This document shows positions 1,877-42,248 of a stretch of 64,000 nucleotides of DNA, in pieces. The position numbers and the translations under genes are program-made. Within the stretch, counting starts at the first letter, position 1, and each line of letters starts with the position of its first letter. The notes beneath the pieces are model-generated. The model ran no database searches and was not told the DNA's origin. It saw nothing but the letters and a program-made list of their open reading frames with translations. Origin of the DNA: Obrimoposthia wandeli (taxonomy: Eukaryota); the NCBI GenBank assembly GCA_977020255.1, contig CDROCS010001825.1, positions 310,001-374,000 on the forward strand, given 5' to 3'.

Positions 1877-2059
1877 GGTACCTGTTTCCTTCAACGTACT
1901 GGTCCTGCTGTGTGCATACGCAGTTCAGTCTGAGGCCGGTGACTTCGATCCCATAGAACACGCAACCATTGAATATCTGAAACAGATTCCGTTTGCTCCC
2001 AAAGTGCAGCAGACCGACGAATTGCTTGTCAGGGTCCGAGATCTTCACCAGGCCGTCAG
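1877..2059 (+). CDS. Exon: FERM central (M) lobe
   Basis: VPVSFNVLVLLCAYAVQSEAGDFDPIEH...PFAPKVQQTDELLVRVRDLHQ resembles the 4.1 LPCSF..LGSYTVQSELGDYDP motif; ttaag acceptor, gtgag donor. Confidence 0.92.
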
Positions 2060-4903
2060 GTGAGACCATCTTTGCCTTTTTTCAAGAAGCTTATCGGTCT
2101 CAAAATTCGACATTTACATCTGCAATACAAGGTTACTTTATTCAAATTCGAGTGTAAATGTTCTGATAAATCTTTTCTCTATTACTCGACTATCGTTTTA
2201 TAAAATTTTCAAGTGGTTGTAAACAATTTGTTGTAACTATACTCCGTATCGAAATTATAAGTACTTCGCAATATTTTATGTATAGTAAGTTTTTATGGAT
2301 ACTAAACTTTAAATATTTTACTAGATATGCCTTGAGGAAATAACTTAAATGAATTTGAAAAAAATAGCTAAATTAAGGCGTACAAAGACAGAGCTTTAGG
2401 GCGAATGCTTAAAAGAATTAAGTATCAAAATCACTGAATTTATGTGTTCAAAACGAATTTAGCGTTGAAATATGGTTGTGTAATGAATAATCCTGCTTTA
2501 ACCGTAGTTCTTAAAGAAAATTGAACTTCGAAAGTATGATGATATTCCGTGATGTTGTTTTCGAAGTCTATATGCTTATTTTACGACATGGATTATTGTA
2601 ACAGTACCAAGAAATCTAATGTTATGAATTAAACATTGAAGTTGTTATTTAGCTACATCAAGATATTACAATATCTTGTTACTATTTCTACAAAGGAGAC
2701 CTAATCCTATGGATTTTCCTATACTTAGTCCTGATCGTTGAAGTTATTTCATAATCGAGATGATTTAGAATACGATATTAATAGATGCCATTGGATTTTT
2801 CAACAAAGCTTTAGATAAGTACAGTATCCATTGTGTATTTTGAGAAATTGATATGCAAATAATGTGTGTCTGCTTTTAACATTTTGAGTGCATTGTCAGA
2901 AACGTTTTCAGACAGTCTTTCAAATGACAGTTATTCTCAACAAGGTTTAAAAGGTGTGTCTAAATAAATGTCTAACATACCATAAAGCTACTAAAACTAA
3001 AAATTAGAAAAGAATGACTTACTGAAATCAAATCGTAAATGAAAATAAGTCAATGAATTATCTACATCCAATATCAGAGCATATGAAAAGTCTATTTCCA
3101 TGTTATTAACATAAAAACTCTCACCTTATAAAAACTTTATTCGTCCAATATAAAGTTCCATAATAAAATACTAAATTTTTCTCAACAAGAAACCTGTTAA
3201 TATTTAATTTAATTTAAATTATTTGACAATTTTAGCGAACAACGCTTGTGAAAATGTTTAATTATCAGTTTTCGTAAAAGTAATATCGAAGCAATTCTAT
3301 TACAATAATGAACATTGATTTTTTTCTTCGAATATAGAAATCAAAAGATTATAATTAAAATAAGATATTATTTCTGTAAAATATAATTGTGTAATTTATT
3401 TTTACTTTCATTATTTCCCGTGCACTTTTCAAAATATTCGTTAGTTATCGTGTTCATCGTTGAATGAATATGTAGTTTAACGTTGTAATGACCAAATCAA
3501 TTAATACTTAGATTACAAGTAGAACAATTGAAGCTAAAAATGATGACATATGCATTTCAATTCCTTTAGTTTGTAAAGATTCTCAATTATAAGGTATTTA
3601 CTTTAAAAAAATGCAAAAATGCAATCTAATAAGTTGGCAACAGGTACCTTTTTATTAGAAATTTGACATACAAAATTGTTACATAACGTTTGAACAATAT
3701 ACTAAAATGCTGCCGAATGTTCACATGAATTGTCGATATTGCAAAATTGCGATAAATTGCATGTAAAATTTTTGTACCACATATCAATTAATTGTGTAAT
3801 TAAATCCTTTTCAGCAAATTGCATTATTGTTATTGTTTTTATATATGAAACTTGAAATAATCGATAATTTTAATTGTTCAACAATGGTTCAACAGTTGTG
3901 TTTTGTATAAATTGTTTATCAATTAAAACTAATAAAATAATTTAATTGATATTCTATTTATCTATTTTTTGTGCAACATTATCTTTCAGCTGAAAAGTAT
4001 TTTAAACAGTGCATATTAAATATTTCATATAAAAAGGAATTTGACTTTTCTATAATTAATCAATGACCAATAAATGACGACACATGTCAAAGCTGAAAAT
4101 AAAGGTTCAGATTTTGTCACATGTATCCGGGTAATTTGAGACAAAAAAATAGATTTATTTTAAAATTCAGAATATTTTCACGAATTATTTTACAGCATTC
4201 ATCACATCATTCTATAATTATTAGAAATTAATTGAATATTGAAATCATTAAATAAAAATGGCCATTTTCCAGTATGGTGTTCAGTTTCTATTTATAATTA
4301 GGAATCTTCTTCTAGACTTTTAACCTGATTTTCATGATTTTACTATCTTATTACATGGTGGAAGATGAATTTTTTTACTCTAATGCAAATAAAATGCATT
4401 ATGATTACGGCAAAAAATTGTCTATAAAAGGCGATTTAATATTTTTATACTGTTTTGATAAAATCTTCATTGGGATTTGTAAAATTTATATATCGGAGGT
4501 AGATATTGAGGAGATTAATATGGAAAATTATGTTACGGTTACAAATTATGAAATGCTGAGGTCGATATATGTCAAATCGTTATTTGTTAACTAATATGTT
4601 TACTGGCCATGTTGATTCTGACGAGATGGAATTATTTAAAGAGAGTTTTTATTTGTTACGCAATGTTATTTAACAGTGATTGAAAAATGCATCTTTCTTA
4701 TTCTAAAGTTTGCGAATTTCATGTTTTCGTATGTATTTAAAGTGGTAAACTACGTGCTTTTTAAACACAGATCTATTAAAAAAATGCGTAGAATAAAATC
4801 CAAAATTAAAAATAACAGTCTTTGTCGCTATTAAAAATCATGAAACGATAGAGAATATAATATAGCGAAAACATGTTGAGTTTCACACAACCCCTGCATT
4901 CAG

Positions 4904-4991
4904 TTTTCTCACTCCGGAAGAAGCCGACAAGAGTTTCATGTGGAACGCAATGAAACTGGGAATGTACGGAGTCGATATGCACAAAGTCAAG
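4904..4991 (+). CDS. Exon: end of FERM M lobe
   Basis: FLTPEEADKSFMWNAMKLGMYGVDMHKVK (cf. GLTPAEAD..FLENAKKLSMYGVDLH); ttcag acceptor, gtcagt donor; absent from ORF track. Confidence 0.92.
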
Positions 4992-5159
4992 GTCAGTTCT
5001 CTATGAATTCAAAAAATAAATATTTCATATGATTGTTATTTTTTGAACAAGTTCATTGATTTATACTAATATTTTGTTCATTGAATAAAAAATGGTTGAA
5101 ATTTAGTTCAAAATTTTCACTGAAATCTTTTTTTTTTCAAAAATTTCACCCCTAATCAT

Positions 5160-6042
5160 TTGAAAATTGTGTCTGTTTAATTGATAATTTCGGTAAATCC
5201 CGACCACCTCAATTCAGAATATTTAAAAGTTTGTGCGAGGAAATGGATAGTCAGCACACAACACAACTTTTTAACACAGATCTGATGTGGTTATTCAGAG
5301 ACAAAGTGCTCATCAATGTTTTTGAACTTCGTAATGAACAAATATTTATTGATTCCAATTACTCTGAATGGAAATTTTAAAATATTTTGTCAAGTACTCA
5401 TATGACTCATGAAACTTGATAACGTCTTCATGATCTACCATCCAGTTTGAATATTTCCCCTCAGTTGCTGACAGTAACGGCTGGGTTCAAAATCCTTGTC
5501 GAATCACAGCAAATCCGGTTAATTTTACGTAAGAATATAAGATCTTAATTAATTTAATTTTTGATTCACAATTACAACGAAATTTTAAATATCTTTCCAT
5601 AAATAATTTTTGATGTAGCTTACGTGAATAGTACCCAAATTTGAGTGATTTTTCCTTTACTACAACATATTTCTGCGAGGGAGAATTTTCCTTTACACTG
5701 CTATATAAACCAAATTCCGAAACAAATTTGATGATGTGCCAGATTTGAGGACACATATATCAAATATTGCCCTAACATCCCCTGGATTATCGATTCTAAA
5801 TCCCAAACCCAATCATCCCACAAATTATTATTATAATAAAAATTTTTAGTAGGTTTTACCTTTATTTTGTTATTTTTTTAAACTTTGTGCAAATCCATAT
5901 TTTTATTAAATGAATTATACATTGGCGGATTAAAAATAGCATTCTATTACCAAACACCACATGTGTATATTTTAAATGTTCCGTACGAAATCACATAGTT
6001 ACAAAAAAATTATTTGACAAAAATATTTGGGAGGAACCCCTG
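5160..6042 (+). mobile_element. hAT (Buster/Charlie-like) transposase relic with probable right end
   Basis: KSRPPQFRIFKSLCEEMDSQHTTQLFNTDLMWLFRDKVLINVFELRNE; PFTTTYFCEGEFS; KFRNKFDDVPDLR; ends ...gggaggaacccctg. Confidence 0.75.
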
Positions 6043-11814: not shown

Positions 11815-12065
11815 ACGAGCACAAATGAGGAGGTGAGTGTGGGTGTCTTCCACAGTGGAGTGCTGGTGTATCGAGGCCGGATCCGCGTTGTGCGATACTC
11901 GTGGCCTAAGATCCTCAATCTCAGTTATAAAAACAAGAGCTTCTTCATGAAGATCCGTGCTACCGAGCTGGAGAAGAAGGAGCGAGTCATCGAGTTCAAG
12001 TGCACTTCACAGAAGCTCGCCAAGAGACTTTGGAATGCCTGCAAGGAACACCACGAGTTTTTCCG
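11815..12065 (+). CDS. Exon: FERM C (PTB/PH-like) lobe
   Basis: VSVGVFHSGVLVYRGRIRVVRYSWPKILNLSYKNKSFFMKIR...AKRLWNACKEHHEFFR; ctacag acceptor, gtgag donor. Confidence 0.95.
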
Positions 12066-15274: not shown

Positions 15275-15468
15275 GATGATCGACGCGGAGAATCCCCGTA
15301 AGCCACAGTTGATGCCTGGATTCGGAACCCGCAAGTATAAGCTGAATGCAATGGGCAACAGCATGGACAGTACCAATGAACCGCAGGCGCCTACAACTCC
15401 CAACATCATCCTCAGCAGACCACAGCCTAAGGTCAGAAGAACTCAGACACAGCGACGAGAAAAAGATT
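15275..15468 (+). CDS. Exon: FERM-adjacent (FA) region
   Basis: MIDAENPRKPQLMPGFGTRKYKLN...IILSRPQPKVRRTQTQRREKD; phase 2 in, phase 1 out; gtgagt donor. Confidence 0.85.
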
Positions 15469-17039
15469 GTGAGTTCCTTCGGTAAATTTATAAGGGTAAC
15501 TATTCTCATTAATCCTTTAAGAAGTCTACCACAGCTTGCCACAGACTCACTAATATATTAAAACAAATTGCTTTTGATAGCCATCTTAAATATGTACGTA
15601 GTAGCAGATGTTTAAAATCTTCCTCTTCACAAAATTTGTGAAATTTCACGAAATAGCTTTTATAAAATTTATAGCTGATATAGCAGCATTAAGATTCTCC
15701 TTCATATTACCACCTAAATGTTTTAATGCCAAGTGTTGTCGGTGTATTATGCAGTACATTCATATTATATGTGGAGCAATAGTTCTCATTAACGATACTC
15801 ACTTTTCATCTGGCATTCTATGGGAGCCACACATCTGTACTGATATGGATTAAATTATTAAGGGAAAATTATTATTTTCATTATGAATTGTTAAAATATC
15901 TAAATCTAAAACAATATCCTCTGTATAAGTGTTTTCAGATAAATTTCTAATGAATAACAATTCTTCTCTGACATCGTTTTGATAAAGAAATCTAACATTT
16001 GAAAACCTTAAGGCCTGGTTAGGAATAGTGGTTTCATCAACTTGAATGTAAAACTTTGAATTTCTCAGAAGTTTTATTAATTTCTCCTCAACATTTCATC
16101 TTGTCTTGTAACTTTCATTCTTGAAAGAGGAACATTATTTAGAATTGATAAAGCATATTTTTCCATAAGTTCTTCAGTACAAGATAATAAAGTAGGCTTT
16201 ATCAATTTCTTTCCATATCCTTGAGAAGCTCCGACGTCTGGCTATGATGTCAGACACTAAACAACGAAGCTTTAATGATTCAATCTGTGACGTATTCGTT
16301 TTCTTGAATTTAATCTAATTTTGATGGCCCATTTGCTTTTATTTCAAAATATTTTAAATTTTTAGCTACAGGTAACGGATGTTTTGTTTCATGATAAATC
16401 TCCAACTTTACTTTAAGATTTCATCGTTAGGCATAATTATATGCGAGAAAATGTTAGAAAAATTAGGCCACATTAGATTCAAACTCGCTTATTAAAAAAA
16501 TTATAAAAACAAAAAGTTATTCTATTGTTTAATTTTTTTTTAAAACCAGGGTATCACTTTCCAGTTTGCTAAAATACAATTAAAAGTAATAATAAGTATA
16601 TTATTTTGTAAAAATTAAGTTGCTTTTTTCACAAAATGTATAATTAAAATTTAAACAAAATTTATATTAAATAAATTAATCATATTTTAATGACCTTTAT
16701 ATTTAAAATTAAATACATTGAGAAAGTTTTAAATTTTTATTAAAAAAATCGACATTCGAAGGTTGAACTTGGCAACTGTTTTTTAGTTATTTATGCCCTA
16801 AAAATTAGAAAATAGTAGTTTTAACCCAAATTCTATTTTTTATGTTACATGGTTAAATTGTTTATTAAAAATGATGATTTTAAACCACCTAATATTTGTT
16901 ATTTATACAAATTTCACTGATGTATTCTAGTTCTCCTTATAATATGTATTTACTAAATGACTTTCTAATTTTGTATCAATATACAGATTCGGTCTATATT
17001 AAAGACGCCGTATTTCTCCTCTGAAGCGTTCATGGGATA

Positions 17040-17420
17040 AATGTAGATTGACTTTATTGATGCACTAGAAGGAGGAGGGGGAAATACGGTATTTGCTTAT
17101 CCCAATTAGCAGAAATATATCTCCCGCAGCTGAGCTCATCACCGTAGTGTAAACACGTTGCATCCGCCATCAAATGGTCACAGATTTCCTGAGAAATTGG
17201 AGTTCTCTGTGTCTCAAGTGTTCTGCGGCGAAGTAAATTGGGACAATAACTTCAAAAATGATGTGTTGCATTTCTCTATGTGACAAGTTTCTGATAAATT
17301 TATGAGATTTGTTAAATATTTTCTTAACTGTTGGATCCATTGAGTAAATGATTTTCAAAATAACACAAGTAAAATATATGGTGAGCTCATTAAAATTTCG
17401 ATTCCACTTTATCAAATAAG
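17040..17420 (-). mobile_element. Possible Gypsy integrase relic
   Basis: Broken-frame pieces QEICDHL and WDKQIPYF resemble integrase motifs; very degenerate. Confidence 0.3.
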
Positions 17421-19119
17421 AAAAGTTTTACAACAGCTCCACTACTGAAGCACGCTAAACCTTACTCGAAATCCAGTTACAGTTACTCAATTTCATTTGT
17501 CCGATAATGAGTAACCCACACATGTAAAATACAAGTACAAACCTCACGAGTTTTGAATTAAATCCTACACCTTTGAAGTCGCGTAAATGGTACATGGGTT
17601 TCGGGTCAAGTATAAATTTGTATTTTTAAATTACGATAAAGTGCAATATTTTTGGAACTGTTTAAAAGCGTTTCTAATTATTTAAAAATAAAAATAATTT
17701 TAATTAATTTAAGTAATATTTAAAATAAAATGTTATAATAATTTAATTAAAATTATAAAATTTATATAAAACGCTTTCTCAAATAATATTTAATTACATT
17801 TTCTTAAGTTTAATTGAGCATATTTTCATTGCCACACATTCACTAATGTATCGAAAAAAATCCCCCAAAAAAAGAACTTTCCGCTAAAAAAAGTTTAAAA
17901 ATATTATATTAATATTACACTTTTTTGTTATACGGCGTAACTGTTACACGGACGTTTAAAGTTTACACGAACAATTGTTTGCATAAAAATTCGTGTAAAC
18001 GTTACGCATGGCTTTTATAGTCCTGCTTACATTTTTATAATAAGGTATTTCTCTGTACAAAACGTTTTCAAGTTGTGCGAAAAATTCGTAACCGTGTAAA
18101 TTTGTAGTTTTAATTACTGTATATTTGTGGTAAAAGCCACATCTTCGTAAGCAAGATTGAAAATGTAAGAAAACATATAAACCTGGATATAGTATGCCAT
18201 AAAATAAGATGCTAATTTTTGATTTTTTGCTTAGAAAGTTAATTATTATCTACTTGTCAAAAGTAAACGTTTATTTAAACTACAAAAATCATTATCATAT
18301 GTAGTAAGTGGAATACATAACTAATACAAAGTATATGCGAATATTGATTGAGTAAGAAAAAATGGATTATGATCTGAATACTGTATGACGAAATTAAAAT
18401 CTATTTATGGATTAATTGTGAACAAAACCACGTACTTATGATTGTACTCCAAAACGTCACCGGTTCTGCACTCTGAAATCAGAGAAATCAGCTTGCACAT
18501 TTTTGTCGTGTCTGGATGGTTTTCGTTAGTCACTACTTTATAATTTGCATGCCTAATGCAGGTAGGCACACTTTGTTAGCATTGAAAATACTTTAGTTGT
18601 TCCAGCTGAAATCGATGAATTTTCATGAATAATCAGATATGAAAAATTTGTTGTAAACTTTGACTTTTAAGCTCAGATTAATTCATTATAAAACAAACAA
18701 TAAAAAATTGAATAAAATTTATGAATATTTTTTAGTAATTTTACCAGATCATCGACAGTCTCTTTATGGCAGACGATACAGTTCTCAGTTAATTTGCCAA
18801 AGGCTCAAAAAGAGGCGACTGTATCTGAGGTAAAACTGGCCTCTAAATTAAGGAGTTGAAGTATATTTCAAATATATTAAATTACTTTAATATTAAATAT
18901 GCATCAAAAAAATTTGGATGATATAAGTTTTTAAGCATATTAATAAAACGTCATTTAATAACAATAAAATATATTTAATATAGCACTAATCTATGATTTA
19001 CTAGTAGAAAACACTTCCTGTTTTCGATTATTTGTCGTAATATTTTCTGAATAGTAAAGCCTTCAGCTGCTTTATAGTTTCTTATATCCATCGAAAGATT
19101 GTTGTTTGTTTGTTATTTG

Positions 19120-19490
19120 AGAATTTTAAACTCATTTCTAGATAAGATAAGAATTATCGTTGCCCCTAAGATGTATATACATGCTCACTACACCAGGCTC
19201 GAGAAGAGCATATAAATATTTTGGCTTTTGTCAGATAATACTTTTTTGATAACAATTTGGATCTCGAATTCAATTCTGGCATCGATTAGCAGTCAATGGA
19301 GCTTCATTAAATGTTCATTTGTACTGGAACTTTTCTTTAGTTTGAATATAATTCTGAGTGTTTTGTTTAAATTTTTTGCAAGTGATTTAATTGATAAATT
19401 GGTATGTTAAAAAAGTATTCCGTTGAAATTCAAGTCTTGATGTAATAAACGCAAGTGTTAGCATTGTAGTTCTCTCAGTAGTAAGGTATT
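19120..19490 (-). mobile_element. L2/CR1-group LINE 3' relic
   Basis: Colinear DNA similarity to 6400-6770 (aggctcgagaag...aatattt, gcagtcaatggagcttcattaaatgttca). Confidence 0.7.
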
Positions 19491-20178
19491 TTCTTTTTCG
19501 GTAAATATTTTTTATATGACTATAAAATATTATTTATTTTATTTTTTAAATTAATAAGTTTTTCACCGATATGTAAGAAACTTATTTTTCTTTAATACGG
19601 TTTATATTATTCTTAGATCCAAATAATTTAAACTGAGTTTTATTTTCACTTTTCTCTAATTGTCTGGATTTCATCCATATATCTATTTGATTAATAATAT
19701 TTTCCATTTCAGAAAATGTGATTGTGATGTCACCCGAATCACAATTAACTTATTGTAGTGTTAACTTATCTTAAACGTGAAAATGAATACCATAATTTTT
19801 TCTTCTTAATAATCGATATGATTGACGAAGTATAAAGAAAATAGGATAATACTAATAATTAAACGTGAAAGATTACTGCATTTTAGGTATTCAATATCTC
19901 AGATATTATTATAAACAGATTGTTTGCGCAAAAGTAAATAACTTTCAAACCCATTCAACTCCTTTCCATTGAATCAAATATTTTCCAAAGTTTTAAAAAA
20001 AATCATGATTAACAGTGTCGAATGTTACGGTTAGATCTAAAATTACTTTAAACACATATTTTTATAACAAATATTAATTTATTGTAAACCAGTATCCAGT
20101 CACATTAGCTACTCATGGGCGCTGAATGAATTCGTCAATTTTCATAGAACTGTAGTTTGAAAATATTTCGGGAATTTC

Positions 20179-20338
20179 TTATGCTGAATAGCAATTTATT
20201 GTACAATTTTGCACATCATATATTGAAGTCGATTTTCTTGAACTTTTATTGATACGAGAACTTTCAATCCAAGTTTAAGAAAATCGGCTTTCAAGATATA
20301 ATATGCACAATTGTACAATTAATTTCCATTCAGCATAA
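20179..20338. repeat. Degenerate palindrome (MITE-like)
   Basis: ttatgctgaat...gattttctt inverted as aagaaaatc...attcagcataa. Confidence 0.75.
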
Positions 20339-20342
20339 TACA

Positions 20343-20553
20343 TGTATTTTTATAATAAACCACTTAATTAAAAGATATATTGCATCTACAATAACCAAAT
20401 ACATCGGAATGGCTTCAAAAATGACGATTTTTTAGATTGAATGTTCGAGTATCAATCTAAAACATTGTCATTTTTTCGATGTTTTTTCGATGTATTTTGT
20501 TATTGTAGATGCAACATATCTTTTAAATAAGTGTTTTATTATAAAAAAATACA
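20343..20553. repeat. Near-complete palindrome (MITE-like)
   Basis: tttttataataaaccactt...ttagattga / tcaatctaa...ttattataaaaa with about 11-nt loop. Confidence 0.8.
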
Positions 20554-20989
20554 GTTTTAAACCAGTAATAATATTTTGAAATGGATTTTCATCTTTAACC
20601 CAATTAATTTCATTAAATGTGGAGTAACATTCTTCCTTCTTCCTATCAGGAAGCTAAAGGAGACAGCTTTATTCAAAATGTTCTGCAATTCATTCAATCA
20701 TTTATTTGATACGTTAGTTAGCAATGTATTATGTAATTATGGTTTTAAAGCCTGACTTTTAAATTTCAATAATCTGATAGTGTTAAAAAATACAAATTCC
20801 AATTTGAAAAGAGTTATGTAATCAGATACCAGAAATATTCTACTTGTAATAATTTGTTAATGAAAAAGTTCTCCTCGAAAGAAAGAACAGATAAAACATG
20901 TAATTCTATAAAATGCGATAGTGACTAAATTCTAGGACATTATATTGAGGAATTTGGGAAAATATTGATGTGTTCTAAGTTTAATTTAG

Positions 20990-23499: not shown

Positions 23500-23950
23500 G
23501 ATTGCCCCTGATCAAGTCATTGGCGGTGTTTTCGTATCGATTATGTGTGCTAAATCATTTTCAGTTTACCAACGTATTACTCAGTCTCAATTCATTGGTC
23601 TTGAACATGATATGGTGTTGCCTTGTCTCTAAATTATACTGAGTTTAATGAAAAAATTGTGAAGCAGAACTTCTGAAAAAAGTTGTTGAATTGACCGATG
23701 GTGCATTCAAGGGCCTACATATCAGGGAATTTGGATAACAGTTTGGACGAGCTGGAGTTGGTGATCCAAATATTTTAGGTAATAGTATCATCTGACTTCA
23801 TGGAGATTGTAAATGTTTGTTTAATGTAGAGTGTCACTATCATCTGGACATTGTTTCAGAAAACTCTTGGGGTGACTGAGAGACGTAGTGGAAAAAGACA
23901 TCTTGACATCGGAGTAACGACACAGCAATAATTGGGATTTTTGTCGTTTT
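23500..23950 (-). mobile_element. Possible RT relic (LTR/DIRS type)
   Basis: LFPLRLSVTPRVF and SDDTIT echo LPFGL..APRVF and YLDDIL; highly decayed. Confidence 0.3.
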
Positions 23951-24335
23951 CGTTGGATAATCTAGTATGCAGTACAAACGACAATCTAAATCAAAAGTTC
24001 ATTTAGCCAATAAATAAATAGTGAACTATTTTACTGATTGTAGTATTAATTATCTAGACAATGCATATAATCATGTAATCTTTATGATTATGAAATTAAG
24101 GATTTTCATAATTACTTTATTATGGATATCCTTATTCAGAATTACCTCATCGTATCCACACTAGGCATTTATGTCTCCCCAAATGTTAGGGGTATTTGGT
24201 TAAAATTCATAATACGTATCAAAGGCATCCATAACGATTAGATTGTAAATTTCCAACTAAGTCTGAAATTTATTTTATTGAATTGCTGCTGGAATAAATG
24301 AGGTTGAACATTGACACTTACGGAAATCGTGACAG

Positions 24336-24526
24336 CACTTGTGACTCCGAGCGGGATCGCGCCAGTCGCCAACAACGATGAGATATTTGAAATCGACGAC
24401 TCCGATATACAGCGACCCGACCTCATCGACGAGTACTGGAAGATGACAGTCCACGACGCGAGTCCCGAGATGGGAATAGATACTGACGGACTGGATGTGG
24501 CAGCCAAGGAAGGCTCAGGCTGGCAG
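24336..24526 (+). CDS. Exon: linker and start of SPRY domain 1
   Basis: YWKMTVHDASPEMGIDTDGLDVAAKEGSGWQ aligns with DDX1 SPRY start as recalled (WQMNPYDR..FAIGSDGL.CQSRE.KEWH); phase 1 in, 0 out. Confidence 0.85.
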
Positions 24527-24711
24527 GTGAGTGATGTTGACTGGTTTAATATCCACCTGTAACTGGGATTTCATTCATAATTTGGCAGTTATGTTAATGT
24601 CGTAATTTATTACGGCTGTTATCAAATTAATATAATATTTTATTCATAATTCAGCTACTGACTATTGTGAATAGTCTAAATTAAACTAATATTGGCTGCC
24701 ACTTACAACAG

Positions 24712-25072
24712 GGTTGTAGAGCCAACCGTGGAGTGAAGGGCCCAGGCATGTACTACTACGAGGGTAAGGTAGTTGAGGACGGTCTTGTGCGTCTGGGATG
24801 GGCTACAAATGAGGCCAGTCTGGATCTTGGTCGGGACAATCTAGGATTCGGCTATGGAGACAGTGTTGCCGGCGATCGAATGAAGGATAGAAATGGCAGG
24901 AAGCGACACGCAGACAAAGAAGAGCCGTATGGAGAGCCGGTACATGAGGGTGATGTGATCGGCTGCAGCATCGACTTCGATAATGACCGTATCTTGTGGA
25001 ATAAGAACGGCATAAACTTTGGACCGGCATATACGATACCACAGGAGCTGCAAAATGAGGCATTCTTTCCCA
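24712..25072 (+). CDS. Exon: core of SPRY domain 1 (DDX1-type)
   Basis: GCRANRGVKGPGMYYYEGKVVEDGLVRLGWATNEASLDLGRDNLGFGYG...GDVIGCSIDFDNDRILWNKNGINFGPAYTIP...AFFP; caacag acceptor, gtgagt donor. Confidence 0.93.
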
Positions 25073-26689
25073 GTGAGTACATTTGCTTGGCTGTCGGAGT
25101 TATACAGACTGGATTCTTAGGACTGTCATTGTAAGAACAATCCAATAGGAATAAAAGCAAAATGTGATATAATAATTTCCATATTTCGATTTATATCCTT
25201 ATAAACTTATCATATTCACGGCTTATAATAATTTAATATACTTTAACTAGAACGCGACTCTCTTCAATCAGTCAATTTTGAACTGTTTGCAAATTTCTAC
25301 AGGGATGTTTTTGTACCTACCAAAGTTAATTTAATAGTAATATTTTAAAAATCATACCACATCGTTGTTTTAACATTGAAAATGCTGTTTTATCTGTAAG
25401 GAGATAATGAAAAATACGCTCATTTGTATAATTCAACAAGGTATCTTTGAACTGTGGTTTCATTCTAGGGAAATTTACTTCAAAATGTTGGGTTAACTAA
25501 ACTCGTTCTGATTACTCAACATTTTCTTTGTCAACTAGCTACTTAATTTGTGAAATGAATACCAATAAAGTAAATCAGAAAAGGAAGTAACTGGGTAGGT
25601 ATTGTTGACATTGACCTTTTTATTTAATATCTGATTTCAGTGTTTGCTTCTTTGGCTTCTAAAAACCCAGTCTTGCTGACAATTTTATTTGTGGGTCTTA
25701 AGCCCTATAAAACTTACTTATGAAATCAGAAACCGGAAATATCATACCTAGAATATTTGTCAATAAATATCCTGTGTACATGAATTAATCTTGTTTTTTG
25801 TAGAATCTGACTCTTGAATCTTGTCTTCAATTGAAGTCAATGAAACCAATGTTGTTAAACATAGAAAGTTTCCAGTGAAATATATCATTGAAATAACATT
25901 GAAACATGTACATACTTCTTTAAGTGTTTGTAGAGGGTAACGTTCACCCGTTTGCTTTCGGACATCACATTATAAATATTGATGCAGTCCTATTAAACTC
26001 ATCAACAGGCTTTTATAATTTTCAGTACACTCGATCGCGCCTAACGTTTTCCAGGTCTTAAGACGTTTGAATGTTGATGTAGCCATAACAAGTCTTTTAG
26101 TACTGCATCTAAATGTCTAAATTTACAAAACATTAACTTTTACATGAAAAAGCTTACTCGTTACATCTTCTTCCCGTTGTTAAGTAGGTGTATATTCTAA
26201 CCGTTCGACACATCTCGTAAGAAATTCAATGTAAAAATAATTTTCTTGAACATTGTAGTAAGTCGATAGTCACGTGATTTTCATAACGCTATTGAGTATT
26301 GAAAGACAATATTCTATTTCTTCGCAATACAGGAATATTTAAAATAAATCTGACTCGTTCATTCTGTCAATTCAATGTCTTAAATTTGGCTATTATCATA
26401 TACAATGTGCAGATAAAAAGCATTCGGACAAATAAACAGAAAAAATGTTTGAAAACAAAACTACACATTATTAATTTTAAAAGTAAAATAAATAACATTA
26501 GTTGCATCGATTGTCAAATTAATAAAGTTATCAGAACATGCAACAGTCATATCAAAAATATATACCTAATAAGAAAATAGCTTACCACTAATATATTTAT
26601 ATATATATATTTTGTTATACATAGCATCACAACTGTTTTACATAACTTAATCATTTTTAGATTCCATTTTTGACGAATTTCTAAGTTTT

Positions 26690-26886
26690 TCCAGATTTCT
26701 AATGAGCTACTGAGAGATCAGAAATAGTAAGTGAATTATGCTCTGTAAATCGAGTGGATGCCCCAAGCAAGACAATAATATATTCATGGATTAAAGAATT
26801 TAAAACAATGTACCAATCCATACAACAAATCTCACAACAACAGCAAAACCGTCAAGTTCATTTATGACATTAAAGAAACCTCTATA
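26690..26886 (+). mobile_element. mariner transposase N-terminal relic abutting the maT element
   Basis: SELCSVNRVDAPSKTIIYSWIKEFK resembles the mariner HTH. Confidence 0.6.
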
Positions 26887-26888
26887 TA

Positions 26889-28180
26889 CAAGGTGTCCCA
26901 TAACGAATTACCCATGTTAAAAATATTATAAAACGATTATAAATTCGATCAAAATCTTCAAGATTTTTAACTTTGCATGGAGTATATATTTGCTACACAT
27001 CCTTATTGTTTCGTTTTACTATATCAATTTTATCAATAAGATATGGCGCCAGAAACAAAACGTGCTTAAATTGTTGCATGTTGGAATTTCTAACAGTGAT
27101 ATAGTAAAGCAGCTGGGTGTGTGTCGCAAAACTGTTTTCAACGTCTGGAAACGACATAATGAGGAGGCTACAACATTTGAGAAAACTAATCTAGGACGAA
27201 AAAGGTCAATCCGTACAAAACGAGTTACTGAAGCTGTGATGAAACGAATCAAGAGGGATCCCCATAGGAGTATGAGAAAAACTGCAAAAGCTATGAATAT
27301 CTCAAAATCCTCAATGCATAGGATATTTAAAAAGGATTTACTGATGACTGCATACAAAAAGCAATCTAGGCAGTTAATTTCAGGTGCTTCCAAGAAGAAA
27401 CGGCTCAACAGGGGCATAATTATGTTAGTAAAAATGAAGCGCGCCGGCGAAAAAAAATGTATCTGGTCTGATGAGAAGATCTTTACCGTGGAGGCAGTTG
27501 CTAATAAGCAAAATGATAGAATTTACGCACATCATTCTACAGATCTTCCCGAAGGTAGCAGAACACATTTCAAGTGACAGAAACCAGCTGGAGTCATGGT
27601 ATGGGCTGCAGTTGCTTCTGATGGGTCTAAGTCCCCTCTGATATTCGTCGATGAAGGTGTTAAGGTGAACACTAATGTATACATCAAAATTTTGGATGAA
27701 AACGTGTTACCCTGGATCACTAGCACATTTGGAGAGCATTATGTATTTACTCAAGATGGTGCACCGGCTCACACGTCTAATTTGACTCAAAAATGGTGTA
27801 AAGATCATTTTTCTGAATTCTGGGACAAGGACGTATGGCCTCCCTCAAGTCCAGACATTAACCCAATGGACTTTTCTATTTGGTCTATCTTAGAGAGCAA
27901 TGTTTCCTCTAAATCATACTCAAATGTAGCTGCTCTAAAAGAAGCCCTTCTTAACACATGGTCCAAGTTTGATGAGGAGGTGGTGCGGCGATCTTGTCAA
28001 TCAGTGACCACTTGTTTACAGGCTATGGTGAAAGCAAAAGCCGGCCATTTTGAGATTTGACTATTTTAAAATATTGGTAAAATATATGTAAACGTATGGT
28101 CCGAGATTTATTATTCTATCTTAAGTTAACATTGAATAATTTTTAAAAAAACCATGGGTAAGTCATTATGGGACACCCTG
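26889..28180 (+). mobile_element. Tc1/mariner DD37D (maT/Bmmar1-like) transposon, 1292 bp
   Basis: TIRs CAAGGTGTCCCATAACGAATTACCCATG and CATGGGTAAGTCATTATGGGACACCCTG (3 mismatches in 28), TA on both sides. Confidence 0.95.
27043..28060 (+). pseudogene. DD37D transposase, disrupted
   Basis: WSDEK, TQDGAPAH, SPDINPMDF with 37 residues between the last two Asp; in-frame TGA at 27575-27577; ATG at 27043 is out of frame with the body. Confidence 0.9.
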
Positions 28181-28299
28181 TACAGTTAAGATGAGTTCAT
28201 TAATTTCAAGTGTTTTACTGATTTTGAGAATGACATGCTATTTCAGGGCTGTACAACTCAAAATCGATGAGAGCCATTAAAAATAAAAGAAAGTAATGT

Positions 28300-28720
28300 G
28301 AGGGTCCTAGGATTATATATCAAAATATCTTTGAAGGGGCCGTTAGTCAGACAAGGTGAATACTTCTTTTTTCAAATTGAAATTTATGATGGAGGATGTC
28401 TGCTCACATATGTAAGTGCTGCCAAAAACACAAAACATTTTCAATGCGAGATCTATAAAAAATTTGTACTTTTTAAAATCCATATTTTTAGTAGAAATAC
28501 TTCAAGCTACTTTCTCTGTGTTTAATTCGGTACACTATCGAACATTGTAGTTCAATAACTTCCAACTGTAACTCAAATGGTAGGTACTCTGGATCAACAG
28601 GAAAATAATCTTCAGTTAGTTTTAATTGAGCTAGTCTTTCGTTAGGTAAAGTAAATCTTTTACTAAATTCTTCAATCAATAAATCAATACTTTTCACCTA
28701 ACCCAGTGCTTTTCGCTGAG
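28300..28720 (-). mobile_element. hAT (SPIN/GTF2IRD2-like) transposase C-terminal relic
   Basis: PFELQLEVIELQCS and LALKMFCVFGSTYICEQTSS. Confidence 0.8.
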
Positions 28721-29312
28721 GAATATGCAAAGCACAAATAGGAGTGAGATATTTCGCGTTTCAACAACTGATATAACGGATATAACGTACATTTTTAGTC
28801 CTTAGAAAATATTATCATTTTTACAAAATATAATTTTATCTTTATGTTTTATTTTTTAATATTGGTACAGTTAACATTATTTTTTAGACATTAAGTAAAA
28901 TATATTAAACTACAGAAACCTGTGTCTGGCATTAAAAAAAATCGAATCAATTTAAATTATATTGATTTGACATAACAAATGAAAGACTGCCTTAAAAATT
29001 GAATATTCAATTTTTACTTTTATTAAATTAATTTGTTTGTAGAAATATAAAGTTGGCTATTATGGAAAACTATTTTAGTCCATTGATTGTCTGTTAAAAT
29101 GGGATTACACTGTGTTTAATTTTCAATTTTTCTAGTATAATTTTGAAACATCTAAAGAAAAACTGTAGATAAGGAGATCTTTTTGAGAGATCTAACACTC
29201 GGGCATCATTTTAAGTTATTTTGATACAGTACATAAAGTTTAAAGTGAAAACTTAATATTTGTATACTTTTCAATATACAATGCTAACGCTATCGCTCTG
29301 TGCTTCAATTAG

Positions 29313-29551
29313 CGTCTAGTATCAAAGACGGTCGAGTAGTATTTAACTACGGTGACGAGCCGTTGGAGTGTGTTCCCAAGGGTGACTGGGTACCACTGAG
29401 CAAGGCGCCCGCGGATAATGTGGTGCCCAATTTCAACTGTGGCTGGCGTATAAACCCCTTCGATAGTACCAAGGGCACTGATGTAGCGGGCAACGGTATG
29501 GAGGTGCAGTCAGCCATGGACGGCCAATGGAATGGCTGCAGGTCCAACAAG
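29313..29551 (+). CDS. Exon: end of SPRY 1 and start of SPRY 2
   Basis: VVFNYGDEP...WVPLSKAPADNVVPN then WRINPFD...GNGMEVQSAMDGQWNGCRSNK; phase 1 in, 0 out; gtaact donor. Confidence 0.9.
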
Positions 29552-29637
29552 GTAACTGAATCCAGTTTGCAATTAACTTGAGCCAACCTTCATTGGATTG
29601 CAGATACATGACCTGATGAATGCTACCCTATTTACAG

Positions 29638-29844
29638 GGCGTATTCGATGCTGGCAAGTATTATTTCGAAGCGATACCGATGGAGGACGGGCTTGCTCGA
29701 TTGGGTTGGGCTACAGACAATGGCAGTCTGAATCTAGGTAGTGATCCACTCGGTTTCGGCTATGGTGCAGATGAGGAAGGATTCGGAATCAGTGGGAATC
29801 AAAGCAAGAAGATGCACAAGGGCGAGATCGACAATTACGGCCGG
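29638..29844 (+). CDS. Exon: SPRY domain 2 core
   Basis: GVFDAGKYYFEAIPMEDGLARLGWATDNGSLNLGSDPLGFGYG...KKMHKGEIDNYGR; tttacag acceptor, gtaagc donor. Confidence 0.93.
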
Positions 29845-29881
29845 GTAAGCGGGTTACATGTGGTTATATTTTATCAGGACT

Positions 29882-30178
29882 GTCATACTGAGGTTGTGTC
29901 ATACCAAGGTTGAGTCATATCGAGGTTATGTCATACCAAGGTTGAGTCATCTCGAGGTTATGTCATAACAAGGTTGAGTCATATCGATGTTATGTCATAC
30001 CAAGGTTGTATCATATCGAGGTTATGTCATACCAAGGTTGAGTCATATCGAGGTTATGTCATAACAAGGGTGAGTCATATCGAGGTTATGTCATACCAAG
30101 GTTGTATCATATCTATGTTATGTCGTACCAAGGTTGTGTCATATCAAGGCTGTGTCATATCGAGGTTCGGTCATATGC
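29882..30178. repeat. Minisatellite, 16-bp monomer organised as 32-bp dimer, about 18 monomers
   Basis: Alternating tgtcataccaaggttg / agtcatatcgaggtta. Confidence 0.92.
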
Positions 30179-32187: not shown

Positions 32188-32394
32188 CCATTCGAGAAAG
32201 GAGATGTCGTGGGTTGCTATATCGATCTGGACAACAAGTTTGTGAAATGGTCTAAGAACGGCGAAGTATTTGGTCCCGCCTACAATCTCCCTGATGATCT
32301 GGTAGAGACCCGGGCCTTTTATCCCACGGCGAGTTTGCTGAATAACACTCTGGACTTCAACTTCGGAGACAGGCCCTTCCAGTTCTATCCCGGG
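32188..32394 (+). CDS. Exon: SPRY domain 2 C-terminal part
   Basis: PFEKGDVVGCYIDLDNKFVKWSKNGEVFGPAYNLP...FYPTASLLNNTLDFNFGDRPFQFYPG; ttgcag acceptor, gtacgc donor. Confidence 0.92.
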
Positions 32395-34418: not shown

Positions 34419-35550
34419 TACCACAGAGAATAGTGTATTATTATGAAAGAAAATATGCAAGAAAAAGTAAATTTCAAAATAAATTGTATTAAAAATTGAT
34501 AAAAATTGTTAAGCACAATTTGCTGCCAATGGAAATACAGAGAAGAGTAAAAAGATTGATCCAGCGGTGAGTGTTGTTGTTTATTTTCTCTTAAGTTTAT
34601 ATAACTTCAAAGTTACTGAGATTTAGCGATCCTTTAATTTAGGTGTATTCCATGAGCTTTGGGGCTTTAGTTCCATTTTTAAAGCTCATTATTTGAAGAA
34701 AAAAAATCTAATATTATTCATTTATCTGCCTAAAAATGACTAAATACACCATTAGGAAAATATTTTAAGATTTCATTACATTTCAATAGTTTTGATATCA
34801 ATATTTTAAAATATGATGAATTTTCAACAAAATATAATATGACTATATCCTATTTGTATTCATCAATAAATGTAGATAATTAAAATAATATCGTCAGAAT
34901 ATGTCAGAATATGTCAATATACCACAGAGAATAGTGTATTATTATGAAAGAAAATATGCAAGAAAAAGTAAATTTCAAAATAAATTGTATTAAAAATTGA
35001 TAAAAATTGTTAAGCACAAAGCTCATTATTTGAAGAAAAAAAATCTAATATTATCCATTTATCTGCCTAAAAATGACTAAATACAGCATTAGGAAAATAT
35101 TTTAATATTTCATTACATTTCAATAGTTTTGATATCAATATTTTAAAATATGATGAATTTTCAACAAAATATAATATGACTATATCCTATTTGTATTCAT
35201 CAATAAATGTAGATAATTAAAATAATATCGTCAGAATATGTCAGAATATGTCAATATACCACAGAGAATAGTGTATTATTATGAAAGAAAATATGCAAGA
35301 AAAAGTAAATTTCAAAATAAATTGTATTAAAAATTGATAAAAATTGTTAAGCACAAAGCTCATTATTTGAAGAAAAAAAATCTAATATTATCCATTTATC
35401 TGCCTAAAAATGACTAAATACAGCATTAGGAAAATATTTTAATATTTCATTACATTTCAATAGTTTTGATATCAATATTTTAAAATATGATGAATTTTCA
35501 ACAAAATATAATAAATGTAGATAATTAAAATAATATCGTCAGAATATGTC
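34419..35550. repeat. Tandem array, unit about 337 bp x3, first unit interrupted by a 162-bp insert
   Basis: taccacagagaatag recurs at 34419, 34920, 35257; third unit has an internal deletion. Confidence 0.92.
34519..34680 (+). repeat. Partial copy of exon 35825-35893 plus donor and intron start
   Basis: Near-identical to 35846-36007 (1 difference seen). Confidence 0.92.
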
Positions 35551-35824: not shown

Positions 35825-35893
35825 ACAGAATGGATTCCAGTCTGCTTTGCTGCCAATGGAAATACAGAGAAGAGTAAAAAGATTGATCCAGCG
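35825..35893 (+). CDS. Short exon: SPRY 2 tail
   Basis: TEWIPVCFAANGNTEKSKKIDPA parallels GDWVPLSKAPADNV of SPRY 1; tttccag acceptor, gtgagt donor, 69 nt phase 0-0. Confidence 0.8.
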
Positions 35894-36539
35894 GTGAGTG
35901 TTGTTGTTTATTTTCTCTTAAGTTTATATAACTTCAAAGTTACTAAGATTTAGCGATCCTTTAATTTAGGTGTATTCCATGAGCTTTGGGGCTTTAGTTC
36001 CATTTTTATGATAAAGCATTTTTTTAAATATTATCAATTGAAACAACACTTTAGAAGTTTTCAATTCATATTGTTAATTAAATTAATTCATATTGCTCTA
36101 TTAAAACTCTATTTGCTCCGGTTTTCCGATAAATTTCTCTGTACCCCAAGTACGTATGTTATTTGCAATTCATTATTTTAAAATGTACAGAGATGTGTTT
36201 TTGTAATTGGTATTTATGCCGTGGTTACTGCTGTGCATAAATTTTAACACATTTACTTTCAAATTTTAATTTGAAGATTAATTATAAATCCGTTTTAAAA
36301 TATAATTAAATTGAATGCGTATTAACATTTATTATCGAACAAAATACATATCTTCATTATTTTTTCGACAATATTATTAAATATCATTAACTTTTAAAAC
36401 TTTCATAAGTTTTAACAAGCCTTTCTAAAAAATAGTCTTGTGTAAGTATTTTTATATACTTTTGAAAATATTAAGTACATATATTTTAATTTATAAGAAA
36501 ACTTATAAAACGATCAAAAGATTTTTATTACTAATATAG

Positions 36540-37700: not shown

Positions 37701-38060
37701 TGGCTGAATCGACCACAAACGGATCGGAAAGAAGACATTCTGGAACTTCGTCGTCAGGAGCGCGACAAGCTGAAGCGGTCTCAGCTAGATAGACATCAAC
37801 AGGAACAGCAGGACCGTGAAAGGCGGCAGTTGCTGCTGCAGAAGCAGAAAGAGGAGGAAGAGTCGCGGCGTCAACGTGAGCGGGACCGCGACGAGGCAGA
37901 TCGGCAGGCTAAGAGAATGCAGGAGATGCGGGACAAAAATGAGCAAGAGCAGAGAAGATTGATGGAGATACAGGAGAGGGAGAGACAGATGCGCGAGGAG
38001 GAAGAAAGACAAAGACTAATGAGGGAGAATGAGACCACTGAAACGGAGGAGAGCTATCAG
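37701..38060 (+). CDS. Exon: E/R/Q/K-rich charged helical segment
   Basis: WLNRPQTDRKEDILELRRQERDKLKR...EEEESRRQRERDRDEADRQAKRMQEMRD...ETTETEESYQ; ctttcag acceptor, gtgag donor, 360 nt phase 0-0. Confidence 0.88.
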
Positions 38061-40050: not shown

Positions 40051-40416
40051 AATAGACAATTTTTATAAATTATTTCTAATGCAAATTTGAAAAAAAAGTC
40101 AATCAAAAATGATAAGAAAGAGTATTAATTATGCATCTTGGTTAAGTTCTGAATCCTAAATAAGTTCATAGTACAAACAGTTATTCACACAAAAAACTAC
40201 ACGTCAAATTAAATTACATTTTTAAACTATCAGATCAATGGAGAACTGTTCCGATTTTAGTCTTAACTCATTTTTAGTTTTTCAACTCTAAAATAAAACC
40301 GAAAGTTAATAAGTGTGGTGTATTAAAGATTGTGCAACGTAGTATTTATTCTGCAACTCTAGCACTTCATCTTCATCATTGTGAATTGGTACTGCATAAT
40401 CGATATAATCCAACAG

Positions 40417-40560
40417 ACGGTGGAGAAGAGTGATCCAACAGTCACCACCGAGACCTTCGTCGATGAGCAAGGCAGAACAGTAATGCGTACTGTCAAAAAG
40501 ACCAAAGTGAAGACCACTACAAATGTACAGCGAAACGTCATCGAACGAACTGAGGATGAG
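40417..40560 (+). CDS. Exon: start of 4.1 C-terminal domain-like region
   Basis: TVEKSDPTVTTETFVDEQGRTVMRTVKKTKVKTTTNVQRNVIERTEDE, Thr-rich like the start of 4.1 CTDs; caacag acceptor, gtaatt donor. Confidence 0.82.
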
Positions 40561-40680
40561 GTAATTTGAGTTACTGATACAAACCTAAGAAAAGTTTGGC
40601 TAATAAACCTTTCAATTAATTTCAATTAGCTTTGAAAAATAAATCTTTGAATAACATGAAGAGTTTATTTTGTTTTTCAG

Positions 40681-40737
40681 ACAAATCGCTCCAGCATTAT
40701 GAGAATTAAAGGAAACTCCTTCTACGATGATGATGAG
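40681..40737 (+). CDS. Short exon within 4.1 CTD
   Basis: TNRSSIMRIKGNSFYDDDE (cf. ETRIEKRI.I.GD.DIDHDQ); tttttcag acceptor, gtactt donor. Confidence 0.78.
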
Positions 40738-42155
40738 GTACTTTTCTATTACAGTTTCTCGCTAATCCGGAGATTTATGTGCTTACAACTTGATTATTAA
40801 GGGTAAAATTATAAATTTCCTTACTCATAGTCAAATATTCACAAATTTATAATCAATGAGTCTTTATTTGGGTTTGAAATAAAAAGTGTGTTTACAAGTT
40901 GATTTCTAGATTGGTTTTCTAATAATCAAGTAATCTCCCATATGTGTTTTAATATATAATCTCCTTTATTTGTCAGTGTATAGTGTAAGAAAACAGGCTG
41001 GTTAACTTTCTTTCGAGTCAGAACATTCATTTCAAAAGTATTTTTATTCTGATAGATTCATTTATTGAGCAAATCACTCTTGGAATAGCTTTTTTATTAT
41101 TGCAATCCAAATAATCTTAATTAATCAAATAATCTTACTCTTCAGCTTCATTTGGGATGTTGAAAAAAATATTCGTGTGAGATGATTTAAACTCAGAAGC
41201 AGGAAATGTAAAATAACAAGACATATATTTCTGAAAATGAAGAATGAACGAGACTGTCACTCGGTACTCGATACTCAGTCAAATAAGCTGAGTAGTCGAA
41301 ACTTGGGAAACGCTACTAAATATCACGTACTCAACCTTGGATTTTCTAATCCTAATTAGTGAAGATGCTTAGCATAAATTTACCAAGAAATTCGATATTA
41401 TCTCATCTTTAATCGGGACAGCTGGACAATCTAGACAGATTTTGACATTCCAATTCTCGTAATACATAAATCTCTAATTTGTGCATTATAATTTGGACAA
41501 CTTTCTTTCATTACTTATTGTTAAAGGATAAAATTCACTTTTTGCCAAATAATGTTTCAACGGTGCATTTAAATAGAATACAATAATGAGTATTACTGAT
41601 ATAAATGGTGATAACAAATGAATTTATGAGTACAGGAAGGCACGGCCTGTAAACAATAAGATAGCATTTTGAGATGTCTAAAAGTTTTTAAAATATCAGT
41701 TAAATAGATTTTTTTAAATGTTCCAGAAATTCTTTCTATTTCAAGATTTTTATAATTTTGATTTTAAATATTAAAGGAATATATCGGTAAAGAAATATTT
41801 TATGTAAATCTAAAACAAGAAGATAATTTTAACAAGTTTTAAGAAATGTTAAATGTAATGTGAATTTTCTAATGACATATTGCAATTAAATTGCAATAAA
41901 TAAACGTAGTAAAGTAGTAAACAATAAATACTATAGAAATTTAAAACTTTATTAAAATAATCATAAAATAAAACTTGATATTTTGTTTGCTTCATTCTAA
42001 AATTACTTGTTATTTTATTCAATTTCTGCCTTTTATTATATTTTTTTTGCATTAATATATTTTTAGTCGCCAAATTTCCAAAGTAGTACTCGATTTTTGA
42101 TTTTCTTATCTGTTTTCCCCTTAAGTATGCATCTTTAACCCAATTCCCGACACAG

Positions 42156-42248
42156 GCTCTTCTATTGGCCATACTAGAGGTGACACAGTTCAATCCCAGC
42201 GTCACTGTCATGGAAGGCGTCAATGATTTATCAATGACATCGGCCTGA
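42156..42248 (+). CDS. Terminal exon: 4.1 CTD end
   Basis: ALLLAILEVTQFNPSVTVMEGVNDLSMTSA* matches coracle/4.1 ALAEAIQEAT.MNPDMTV as recalled; an in-frame upstream acceptor would start the exon at 42126. Confidence 0.8.
   Translation, partial: ALLLAILEVTQFNPSVTVMEGVNDLSMTSA

Follow-up and report, generated by a model that had tools for sequence, protein, structure and literature searches.

The 64,000-nt stretch of Obrimoposthia wandeli DNA analysed here (G000:C1825:310001-374000, hereafter the window) very probably carries 13 of the 17 exons of one gene of about 65 kb, whose product combines a FERM domain of protein 4.1 type with two DDX1-type SPRY domains in the middle of the protein. The exons were recovered from a stop-to-stop scan of the + strand together with inspection of splice sites, and their borders were corrected by eye. 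The gene begins upstream of the window, and its four further exons, at G000:C1825:287481-300031, were found in the 40 kb preceding it. When joined, the 17 exons give an open reading frame (ORF) of 3165 nt encoding 1054 amino acids (aa); every exon has AG acceptor/GT donor borders of compatible phase, and the in-window stretch closes with a TGA at 42248. A previous reading of the window from its letters (the sequence-only reading) had counted 14 exons, a number that becomes 13 in the window plus the four upstream. On the other hand, its end coordinates, 1877 and 42248, and its junctions 15468/24336 and 35893/37701 proved exact upon splice-site inspection.

Transcript support for a single gene

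Run X3 derives from the same sample as the assembly and comprises 50 Mb of contigs. One of them, 3,629 nt long, was placed on window positions 24250-29900, where it covers the exons 24336-24526, 24712-25072, 29313-29551 and 29638-29844 but none of the three GT..AG introns between them (185, 4240 and 86 nt), with exon borders identical to those of the model. None of these joints was seen in the three DNA runs of the same sample. The loose ends of the contig reach into the adjacent exons: the end before 24336, GAACTCAGACACAGCGACGAGAAAAAGATT, is the final 30 nt of the exon ending at 15468, and the end after 29844, CCATTCGAGAAAGGAGATGTCGTGGGTTGC, is the opening 30 nt of the exon starting at 32188. 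The joint 15468/24336 is thus shown by the overhang letters of the contig. The sequence-only reading had proposed a single gene and had singled out this joint for checking, and both are borne out by the spliced contig.

The length of the contig also fits the full model. Position 24336 corresponds to contig position 1359 and to position 1295 of the coding sequence (CDS), with 1358 nt of contig upstream, and the total of 3629 nt equals a leader of 64 nt, the CDS of 3165 nt and a trailer of 400 nt. Past the covered exons, there is room for the remaining 873 nt of CDS and the 400-nt trailer. In terms of word content, one stretch that is 61% exon has 61% of its words in X3, and all sampled words of the exon 37701-38060 occur in it. 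The joint 35893/37701 rests on phase, homology, the presence of this last exon in X3 and the contig-length arithmetic.

We considered whether the SPRY exons could make up a gene in their own right, with a separate start and stop, nested within one of the long introns of a 4.1-like gene. Indeed, large transposon-bearing introns flank these exons, reading through the donor at 32394 meets a stop after 11 codons, and in an old annotation of Schistosoma mansoni a 624-aa 'SPRY domain containing protein' stands on its own. Yet the X3 contig joins 15468 straight to 24336 and runs from 29844 into 32188, its 1358 nt before 24336 match the FERM and FA exons plus the 64-nt leader, and the orthologs carry everything in a single ORF on intron-less contigs, their sequence aligning without a break across the joint 15468/24336. 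Since the overhangs of the contig are the end of the FA-like exon and the start of the exon at 32188, a nested SPRY gene is scarcely credible; transcripts placing the SPRY exons in such a gene had been named by the sequence-only reading as a danger to its proposal, and the X3 contig contradicts this placement. The fused form could also be a chimera made in assembly, or come from read-through between adjacent genes, rather than being the main product, given that a contig spanning two genes is no proof of a single transcript and that the evidence in O. wandeli consists of one contig from one sample. This is very improbable, considering that the joint has canonical splice sites in the correct phase, that plain skipping of all SPRY exons would break the frame (by phase, 15468 to 29313 is the one SPRY-skipping joint that would keep it), and that the same fusion was independently predicted or assembled in more than 20 flatworm species, several with two paralogs each, a second paralog with the same exon order being present on contig C879 of the O. 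wandeli genome itself. A single gene coding for FERM and both SPRY domains thus remains the preferred reading.

The twin SPRY domains and their relation to DDX1

The DDX1-like motifs listed in the sequence-only reading are all present in the window translation (W..NP.D, GCR, LGWAT..SL.LG.D.LGFGYG, NFG and PLSKAP), and the likeness to the SPRY domain of DDX1 reaches into the domain flanks. The flank following SPRY2, on the exon 35825-35893, starts with TEWIPVCFAANG, its counterpart after SPRY1 is GDWVPLSKAPADN, and a homologous segment, 'DWxPxxxAP', is found in the orthologs. To search for relatives, the SPRY1 exon was compared by exhaustive phmmer with 1.84 billion representatives, and word-indexed searches were run with a full-length member of the family. 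Beneath the family itself, the best SPRY matches in the phmmer ranking were genuine DDX1 proteins. In a sequence search of the PDB, the SPRY domain of DDX1 (4XW3) came out at E 4.3e-22 (82 bits), ahead of RyR1 (1e-8, 39 bits), RanBP9 (9e-6) and ASH2L (5e-4). As judged from sequence, the two domains therefore qualify as DDX1-type, being closer to DDX1 than to RyR, RanBP9 or ASH2L.

In the SPRY tree, the SPRY2 domains form a clade (99/94), as do 18 of the 20 SPRY1 domains (100/99), and the clade uniting SPRY1 and SPRY2 (95/88) is sister to a DDX1 clade (94/86) that includes the DDX1 of the same genome. Two Macrostomum-type SPRY1 domains are placed just outside, and a single clade of all 40 domains was not rejected (approximately unbiased test, p-AU 0.38). 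The tandem therefore goes back to an internal duplication that predates the flatworm radiation sampled here. The SPRY domains do not group away from DDX1, an outcome that the sequence-only reading had listed as speaking against it.

The fold comparison gives a similar picture. For the twin SPRY of the ortholog from Clonorchis, AlphaFold gave a confident model, with a predicted local distance difference test score (pLDDT) of 90.6 and a predicted template-modelling score (pTM) of 0.82. Its top Foldseek match in the PDB is again 4XW3, with a template-modelling (TM) score by target of 0.90-0.92, a root-mean-square deviation of 1.6 Å and 40% identity. Among 2.3 million AFDB fold clusters, the whole tandem is matched by only five (TM by query 0.86-0.96), all of which look like family members, and the next-best matches span one SPRY only (TM by query up to 0.45). 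This suggests that the twin SPRY is a fixed two-domain unit, with a predicted rigid packing. Thus, the SPRY domain of DDX1 is the best match in both sequence and fold for the two window-type SPRYs, flanks included. Ryanodine receptors, the Dictyostelium SplA kinase and hnRNP-U-like multi-SPRY proteins share the SPRY beta-sandwich, but the similarity is much weaker, and none of these multi-SPRY proteins matches the whole tandem above a TM by query of 0.45.

DDX1 has a DEAD-box RecA1/RecA2 helicase core, and its SPRY is inserted in RecA1. The window protein differs from DDX1 by the lack of RecA/helicase motifs, by the presence of SPRY in two tandem copies, and by an insert of 10-12 residues in the GFG...KK loop, which is common to the family SPRYs. 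The absence of helicase motifs, claimed in the sequence-only reading, holds over the 104 kb examined: tblastn with the N-terminal and helicase parts of DDX1 retrieved no helicase motif or remnant, only the SPRY part of DDX1 matching. A helicase remnant hidden in the introns was rejected on the same grounds, the tblastn of the DDX1 helicase part being blank over these 104 kb. Pfam detects no DEAD or Helicase_C domain in the orthologs. The true DDX1 of the same genome is located on a separate contig, C3999.

The module had been described as helicase-derived. Of this claim, the affinity to DDX1 stands, and nesting inside the DDX1 clade does not, the family being placed as its sister. The twin SPRY could accordingly stem not from the DDX1 gene but from an older, independent DDX1-like SPRY lineage or another carrier, later lost elsewhere. 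Such an origin would agree with the position of the FERM-SPRY clade outside the DDX1 clade that holds the DDX1 of the same genome, with the existence of DDX1-like SPRYs in other architectures (a La/zinc-finger protein, P0064, and an hnRNP-U-like one, P0139), with the insert absent from DDX1, and with exon structure, as one exon of the genome's DDX1 spans the whole SPRY (residues 84-321 of query P0195, in one frame) whereas the window SPRYs are intron-split. However, the exhaustive search of 1.84 billion representatives revealed no donor nearer than DDX1, whether stand-alone or other, and DDX1 is the only widespread carrier. Moreover, the flanks of the DDX1 SPRY are similar as well, and a captured domain that diverges fast can end up in a tree outside the clade from which it came. 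We therefore regard a source other than DDX1 as somewhat unlikely. Descent of the SPRYs from the DDX1 helicase is likely and is the simplest reading, although the tree lacks nesting. In this scenario, the flatworm stem lineage would most probably have acquired the module from the ancestral DDX1 gene, or from a copy of the part coding for its SPRY, and the captured SPRY would then have been duplicated in tandem.

Protein 4.1 affinity, flatworm relatives and possible function

On single exons, Pfam recognised FERM_M (weakly), FERM_C and, on three exons, SPRY (Table 1); the FA-like exon, the charged exon and the two tail exons had no match. Two further parts of protein 4.1 were traced by profile-profile comparison. 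With hhalign, the region following FERM matched the canonical FA region of 4.1/PTPN4 at 98% probability (E 1.7e-13, 58 columns, including the HHxFFRL anchor at the end of FERM_C), and the family tail matched the canonical 4.1 C-terminal domain (CTD) at 93% (E 3.3e-7), this match being confined to the final 23 columns. In the tail alignment, two motifs are conserved across the family, and the upstream one resembles the CTD by eye only. Because the Pfam models are silent on these parts and the link comes from profile-profile comparison only, we call them FA-like and CTD-like. The order FERM-FA-SPRY-SPRY-charged helix-4.1 CTD put forward in the sequence-only reading thus stands for FERM and the SPRYs, while its FA and CTD lie below Pfam thresholds; likewise, among the domains it had expected from InterPro/CDD, checked here by Pfam, FERM_M (weak), FERM_C and SPRY were detected, FA and 4_1_CTD were not.

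The nearest FERM domain outside flatworms is that of a mollusc band 4.1 (Patella, 42% identity), ahead of PTPN4. In the PTPN4-rooted FERM tree, the FERM-SPRY proteins all fall into a single clade (100/99) within the invertebrate part of the 4.1 group, and their placement in this group, with PTPN4 as outgroup, is supported at 100/100. By sequence, the FERM domain of the window protein is therefore assigned to the 4.1 group. With the protein 4.1 family (EPB41, EPB41L1-3, Drosophila Coracle, mollusc band 4.1-like), the window protein shares the three-lobed 4.1-subtype FERM and the HHxFFRL motif, after which comes an FA-like stretch, and its terminal motif, D-x-D-x-ALxxAIxxxTxxxPxxSV, resembles the CTD of these proteins. 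It differs from them in FA and CTD regions that have diverged beyond recognition by Pfam, in a species-specific 120-aa E/R/Q-rich segment, and in a mid-region made of two SPRYs instead of a spectrin-actin-binding (SAB) domain. Indeed, the SAB domain (PF04382) was not found in any family member, and the two SPRYs occupy its position. Coracle and other invertebrate 4.1 proteins are not known to carry a recognisable SAB either, and the domain is hence not strictly defining. Measured against characterised systems, the window gene is a variant of the 4.1 family.

The E/R/Q-rich segment, encoded by the exon 37701-38060, contains 22% R, 22% E and 16% Q and is not conserved in the tail alignment of orthologs. 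It is probably a long charged helix, for which the role of a spacer is the simplest reading.

The phmmer search with the SPRY1 exon placed 12 proteins on top (E 3e-90 to 3e-34), including sequences from Echinostoma, Dicrocoelium, Clonorchis, Paragonimus, Mesocestoides, Schistocephalus and Cichlidogyrus. In Pfam scans of ten of these, FERM lobes (FERM_N/M/C) came together with two SPRY stretches in nine, and one fragment had SPRY only; the other two are short SPRY-bearing fragments. The search with a full-length member added Schistosoma, Trichobilharzia, Fasciola, Opisthorchis, Calicophoron, Echinococcus, Taenia, Hymenolepis, Spirometra and Macrostomum lignano. In all, the architecture is common to about 40 database clusters, which come from trematodes, cestodes, monogeneans and Macrostomum, and thus occurs in all major flatworm groups, parasites included. 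Among the search matches, no FERM-SPRY protein came from outside flatworms, everything below the family being true DDX1 or of another architecture. Three members are unbroken ORFs of about 1100-1200 aa on transcript-sized, intron-less Logan contigs of 3.5-4.0 kb (SRR28338163/4, SRR13259298; P0189). The window protein belongs to this family, as indicated by its spliced ORF, the transcript contig, its position within the family clades of both trees and the tail alignment. Orthologs are 45-53% identical to it in FERM and SPRY; those of Clonorchis sinensis ('Band 4.1-like protein 3'), S. mansoni (XP_018653822.1, 'putative 4.1 G protein'), Echinococcus multilocularis (CDS37228.1, 'SPRY domain containing protein') and M. 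lignano (PAA52686.1) have the same domain order and tail motifs, but their linkers differ and the charged helix is present only in the window species. Within Neodermata, the sequences fall into paralog groups A and B; the SPRY2 of the window gene is nearest to group A, and its FERM and SPRY1 group clearly with neither.

Two other genes of the same genome are related to that of the window. A second FERM and twin-SPRY paralog (G000:C879:764500-793700, - strand, loci L018-L021) has the same exon order in a more compact layout, about 30 kb in length; between its SPRY exons and those of the window gene there is 55-60% identity, and its tail motif is like that of the Clonorchis protein P0180. A third, 4.1-like gene (G000:C734:322000-326900, + strand, loci L015-L016) codes for FERM and a canonical FA motif, with no SPRY. 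Its FERM is 69% identical to that of its ortholog, Trichobilharzia P0225, and the gene is nearer to mollusc 4.1 (46-50%) than the window gene is.

The database names of the orthologs are inconsistent, ranging over 'Band 4.1-like protein 2/3', 'putative 4.1 G protein', 'erythrocyte membrane protein band 4.1' and 'SPRY domain containing protein'. Several are misnamed 'ATP-dependent RNA helicase DDX1' or 'DEAD box helicase 1' while lacking a helicase domain (Clonorchis GAA30691.2, Cichlidogyrus KAL3319268.1), and the same holds for the S. haematobium XP_051072071.1 and E. granulosus XP_024353847.1, also named as DDX1. The S. mansoni 'SPRY domain containing protein' of 624 aa appears to represent a part that was split off from the gene. 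Our literature search retrieved gene lists only, and no paper discussing the FERM and twin-SPRY architecture. Three cercaria-enriched '4.1 G proteins' are listed in S. mansoni (PMC3166049), and an extracellular-vesicle proteome lists a 'SPRY domain containing protein' and a 'Band 4.1-like protein' (PMC5818524), the likeness to the FERM-SPRY family being one of names in both cases. The architecture, whose novelty the sequence-only reading had left to a search across Metazoa, is thus not new to databases, and the family, though visible there, is apparently uncharacterised in the literature searched.

In 4.1 proteins, the FERM lobes anchor to the tails of membrane proteins and to phosphoinositides, and the vertebrate members carry a spectrin-actin-binding region between FA and CTD. 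By analogy with other 4.1 proteins, the FERM lobes of the window protein would dock it at the cell cortex, where they would contact phosphoinositides and the cytoplasmic tails of membrane proteins. The twin SPRY may act as a rigid module binding putative partners, this mid-module deciding what is tethered, with the charged helix as a spacer and the conserved C-terminal motif keeping a CTD-type contact. From this analogy, we infer a cortical scaffold with a rigid twin-SPRY binding module. The septate-junction role and the ribonucleoprotein partners suggested in the sequence-only reading would be candidate functions only.

According to PMC4555926, the SPRY of DDX1 bears a conserved positive patch and is a putative platform for protein interactions. 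What it does at the molecular level is still not known, and the tRNA ligase complex can assemble without it (PMC8668186); therefore, no ligand can be transferred by homology. It is quite unlikely, in our estimate, that the twin DDX1-type SPRY is a synapomorphy of Platyhelminthes which replaced the spectrin-actin link and brings ligands of the DDX1 SPRY, possibly RNA-processing or ribonucleoprotein ones, to the membrane skeleton of the epidermis or tegument. If true, this would mean a phylum-specific cortex-to-cytoplasm wiring present in all parasitic flatworms. The 4.1 adaptors are a textbook family in which the middle region sets what the membrane is tied to, and a whole phylum, including schistosomes, liver flukes and tapeworms, appears to have exchanged this middle for a rigid SPRY pair otherwise typical of an RNA helicase. 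This would represent a clean, datable domain capture followed by tandem duplication, and would offer a second, independent context for finding what the DDX1-type SPRY binds. The FERM and twin-SPRY combination may also mark a flatworm-specific cytoskeletal protein, which is of practical use given that orthologs are inconsistently named, several as 'DDX1', and that older annotations split the gene in two.

Several points weigh against the reading of the window gene as a 4.1-type protein with SPRYs taken from DDX1. The Pfam model FA (PF08736) is silent on the exon, in the orthologs and at the locus in the whole-genome scan, and 4_1_CTD (PF05902) is silent on the exons, in the ortholog tails (even at E<=1) and at the locus in the same scan; the CTD link amounts to 23 aligned columns. 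The FERM tree left out FRMD3/5 and EPB41L4/5 sequences. In the SPRY tree, the twin SPRYs are sister to DDX1, not nested within it, and outgroup sampling is thin. Concerning the gene model, the evidence for the exons 35825-35893, 40417-40560 and 42156-42248 consists of phase, homology and contig-length arithmetic. Run X3 is not recorded as RNA, its transcript nature being deduced from the spliced contig and its size of 50 Mb, and no run recorded as RNA was found to hold the locus.

Exon coordinates and repeats around the exons

The exons of the gene are listed in Table 1.

Table 1. Exons of the FERM and twin-SPRY gene (window positions; negative values lie upstream of the window)
Exon	Position	Strand	Encoded part	Evidence
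Four upstream exons	-22519..-22214, -20189..-20082, -10182..-10140, -10089..-9969	+	N-terminus and FERM_N	
5 (first in window)	1877..2059	+	FERM central lobe, aa 193-254	weak Pfam FERM_M; phase 2 entry fits upstream exon ending at -9969; orthologs 50-58% identity (tblastn)
6	4904..4991	+	end of FERM central lobe, aa 254-283	splice sites, phase; orthologs 55-65% identity
7	11815..12065	+	FERM C-terminal PH-like lobe, aa 284-367	Pfam FERM_C E=8.1e-25; splice sites
8	15275..15468	+	divergent FA-like region, aa 367-432	splice sites; profile-profile match
9	24336..24526	+	linker and SPRY1 N-terminal flank, aa 432-495	transcript contig from exactly 24336
10	24712..25072	+	SPRY1 core, aa 496-616	Pfam SPRY 8e-14; DDX1 4XW3 E=4.3e-22
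11	29313..29551	+	last SPRY1 strands and SPRY2 N-terminal flank, aa 616-695	transcript joint; orthologs
12	29638..29844	+	first half of SPRY2 core, aa 696-764	Pfam SPRY 5.4e-5; transcript joint 29551/29638
13	32188..32394	+	second half of SPRY2 core, aa 765-833	Pfam SPRY 1.3e-9; transcript overhang
14	35825..35893	+	SPRY2 C-terminal flank, aa 834-856	splice sites, phase 0 on both sides; orthologs
15	37701..38060	+	120-aa E/R/Q-rich segment, aa 857-976	splice sites; composition; words in run X3
16	40417..40560	+	first conserved tail motif, PxVxxETFVDEQGRTVMRTVKKTKVxTT, aa 977-1024	splice sites; ortholog conservation; weak tblastn match to P0180
17	42156..42248	+	terminal 4.1-CTD-like motif EDEALLLAILEVTQFNPSVTV and TGA, aa 1025-1054	hhalign; tail alignment

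Repeats and mobile elements were observed in several places of the window. Its beginning (1-1370) is occupied by a high-copy dispersed repeat, of which more than 40 copies with 87-99% identity occur on other contigs of the same genome, and which has internal inverted pieces at about 1111-1363. Intron 8 contains a degenerate retroelement (21014-22400, + strand), composed of an RVT_1 ORF (E 1.7e-26) followed by stop-broken open frames. A Tc1/mariner-like transposase with helix-turn-helix (HTH) and DDE_3 domains (26921-28057, + strand) is located within the 4.2-kb intron that splits SPRY1. Over this element, word depth in the DNA runs is 1e4-1e5, as compared with tens in the flanks, and a 1,489-nt contig of run X3 covers 27382-28870; copies of the element therefore appear to be transcribed.

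A 32-bp minisatellite (29882-30176; 9.2 copies, 87% matches) begins 38 nt past the donor of the exon 29638-29844 and yields long spurious open frames in all three + frames. Furthermore, the last 48 nt of the exon 35825-35893, together with its donor and 115 nt of intron (35846-36008), are duplicated at 34519-34681 with 99.4% identity. Since this copy has a donor but no acceptor, it constitutes a decoy half-exon within the intron. It is directly followed by a 337-bp tandem repeat (2.5 copies, 99%), the whole arrangement lying within 34519-35513.

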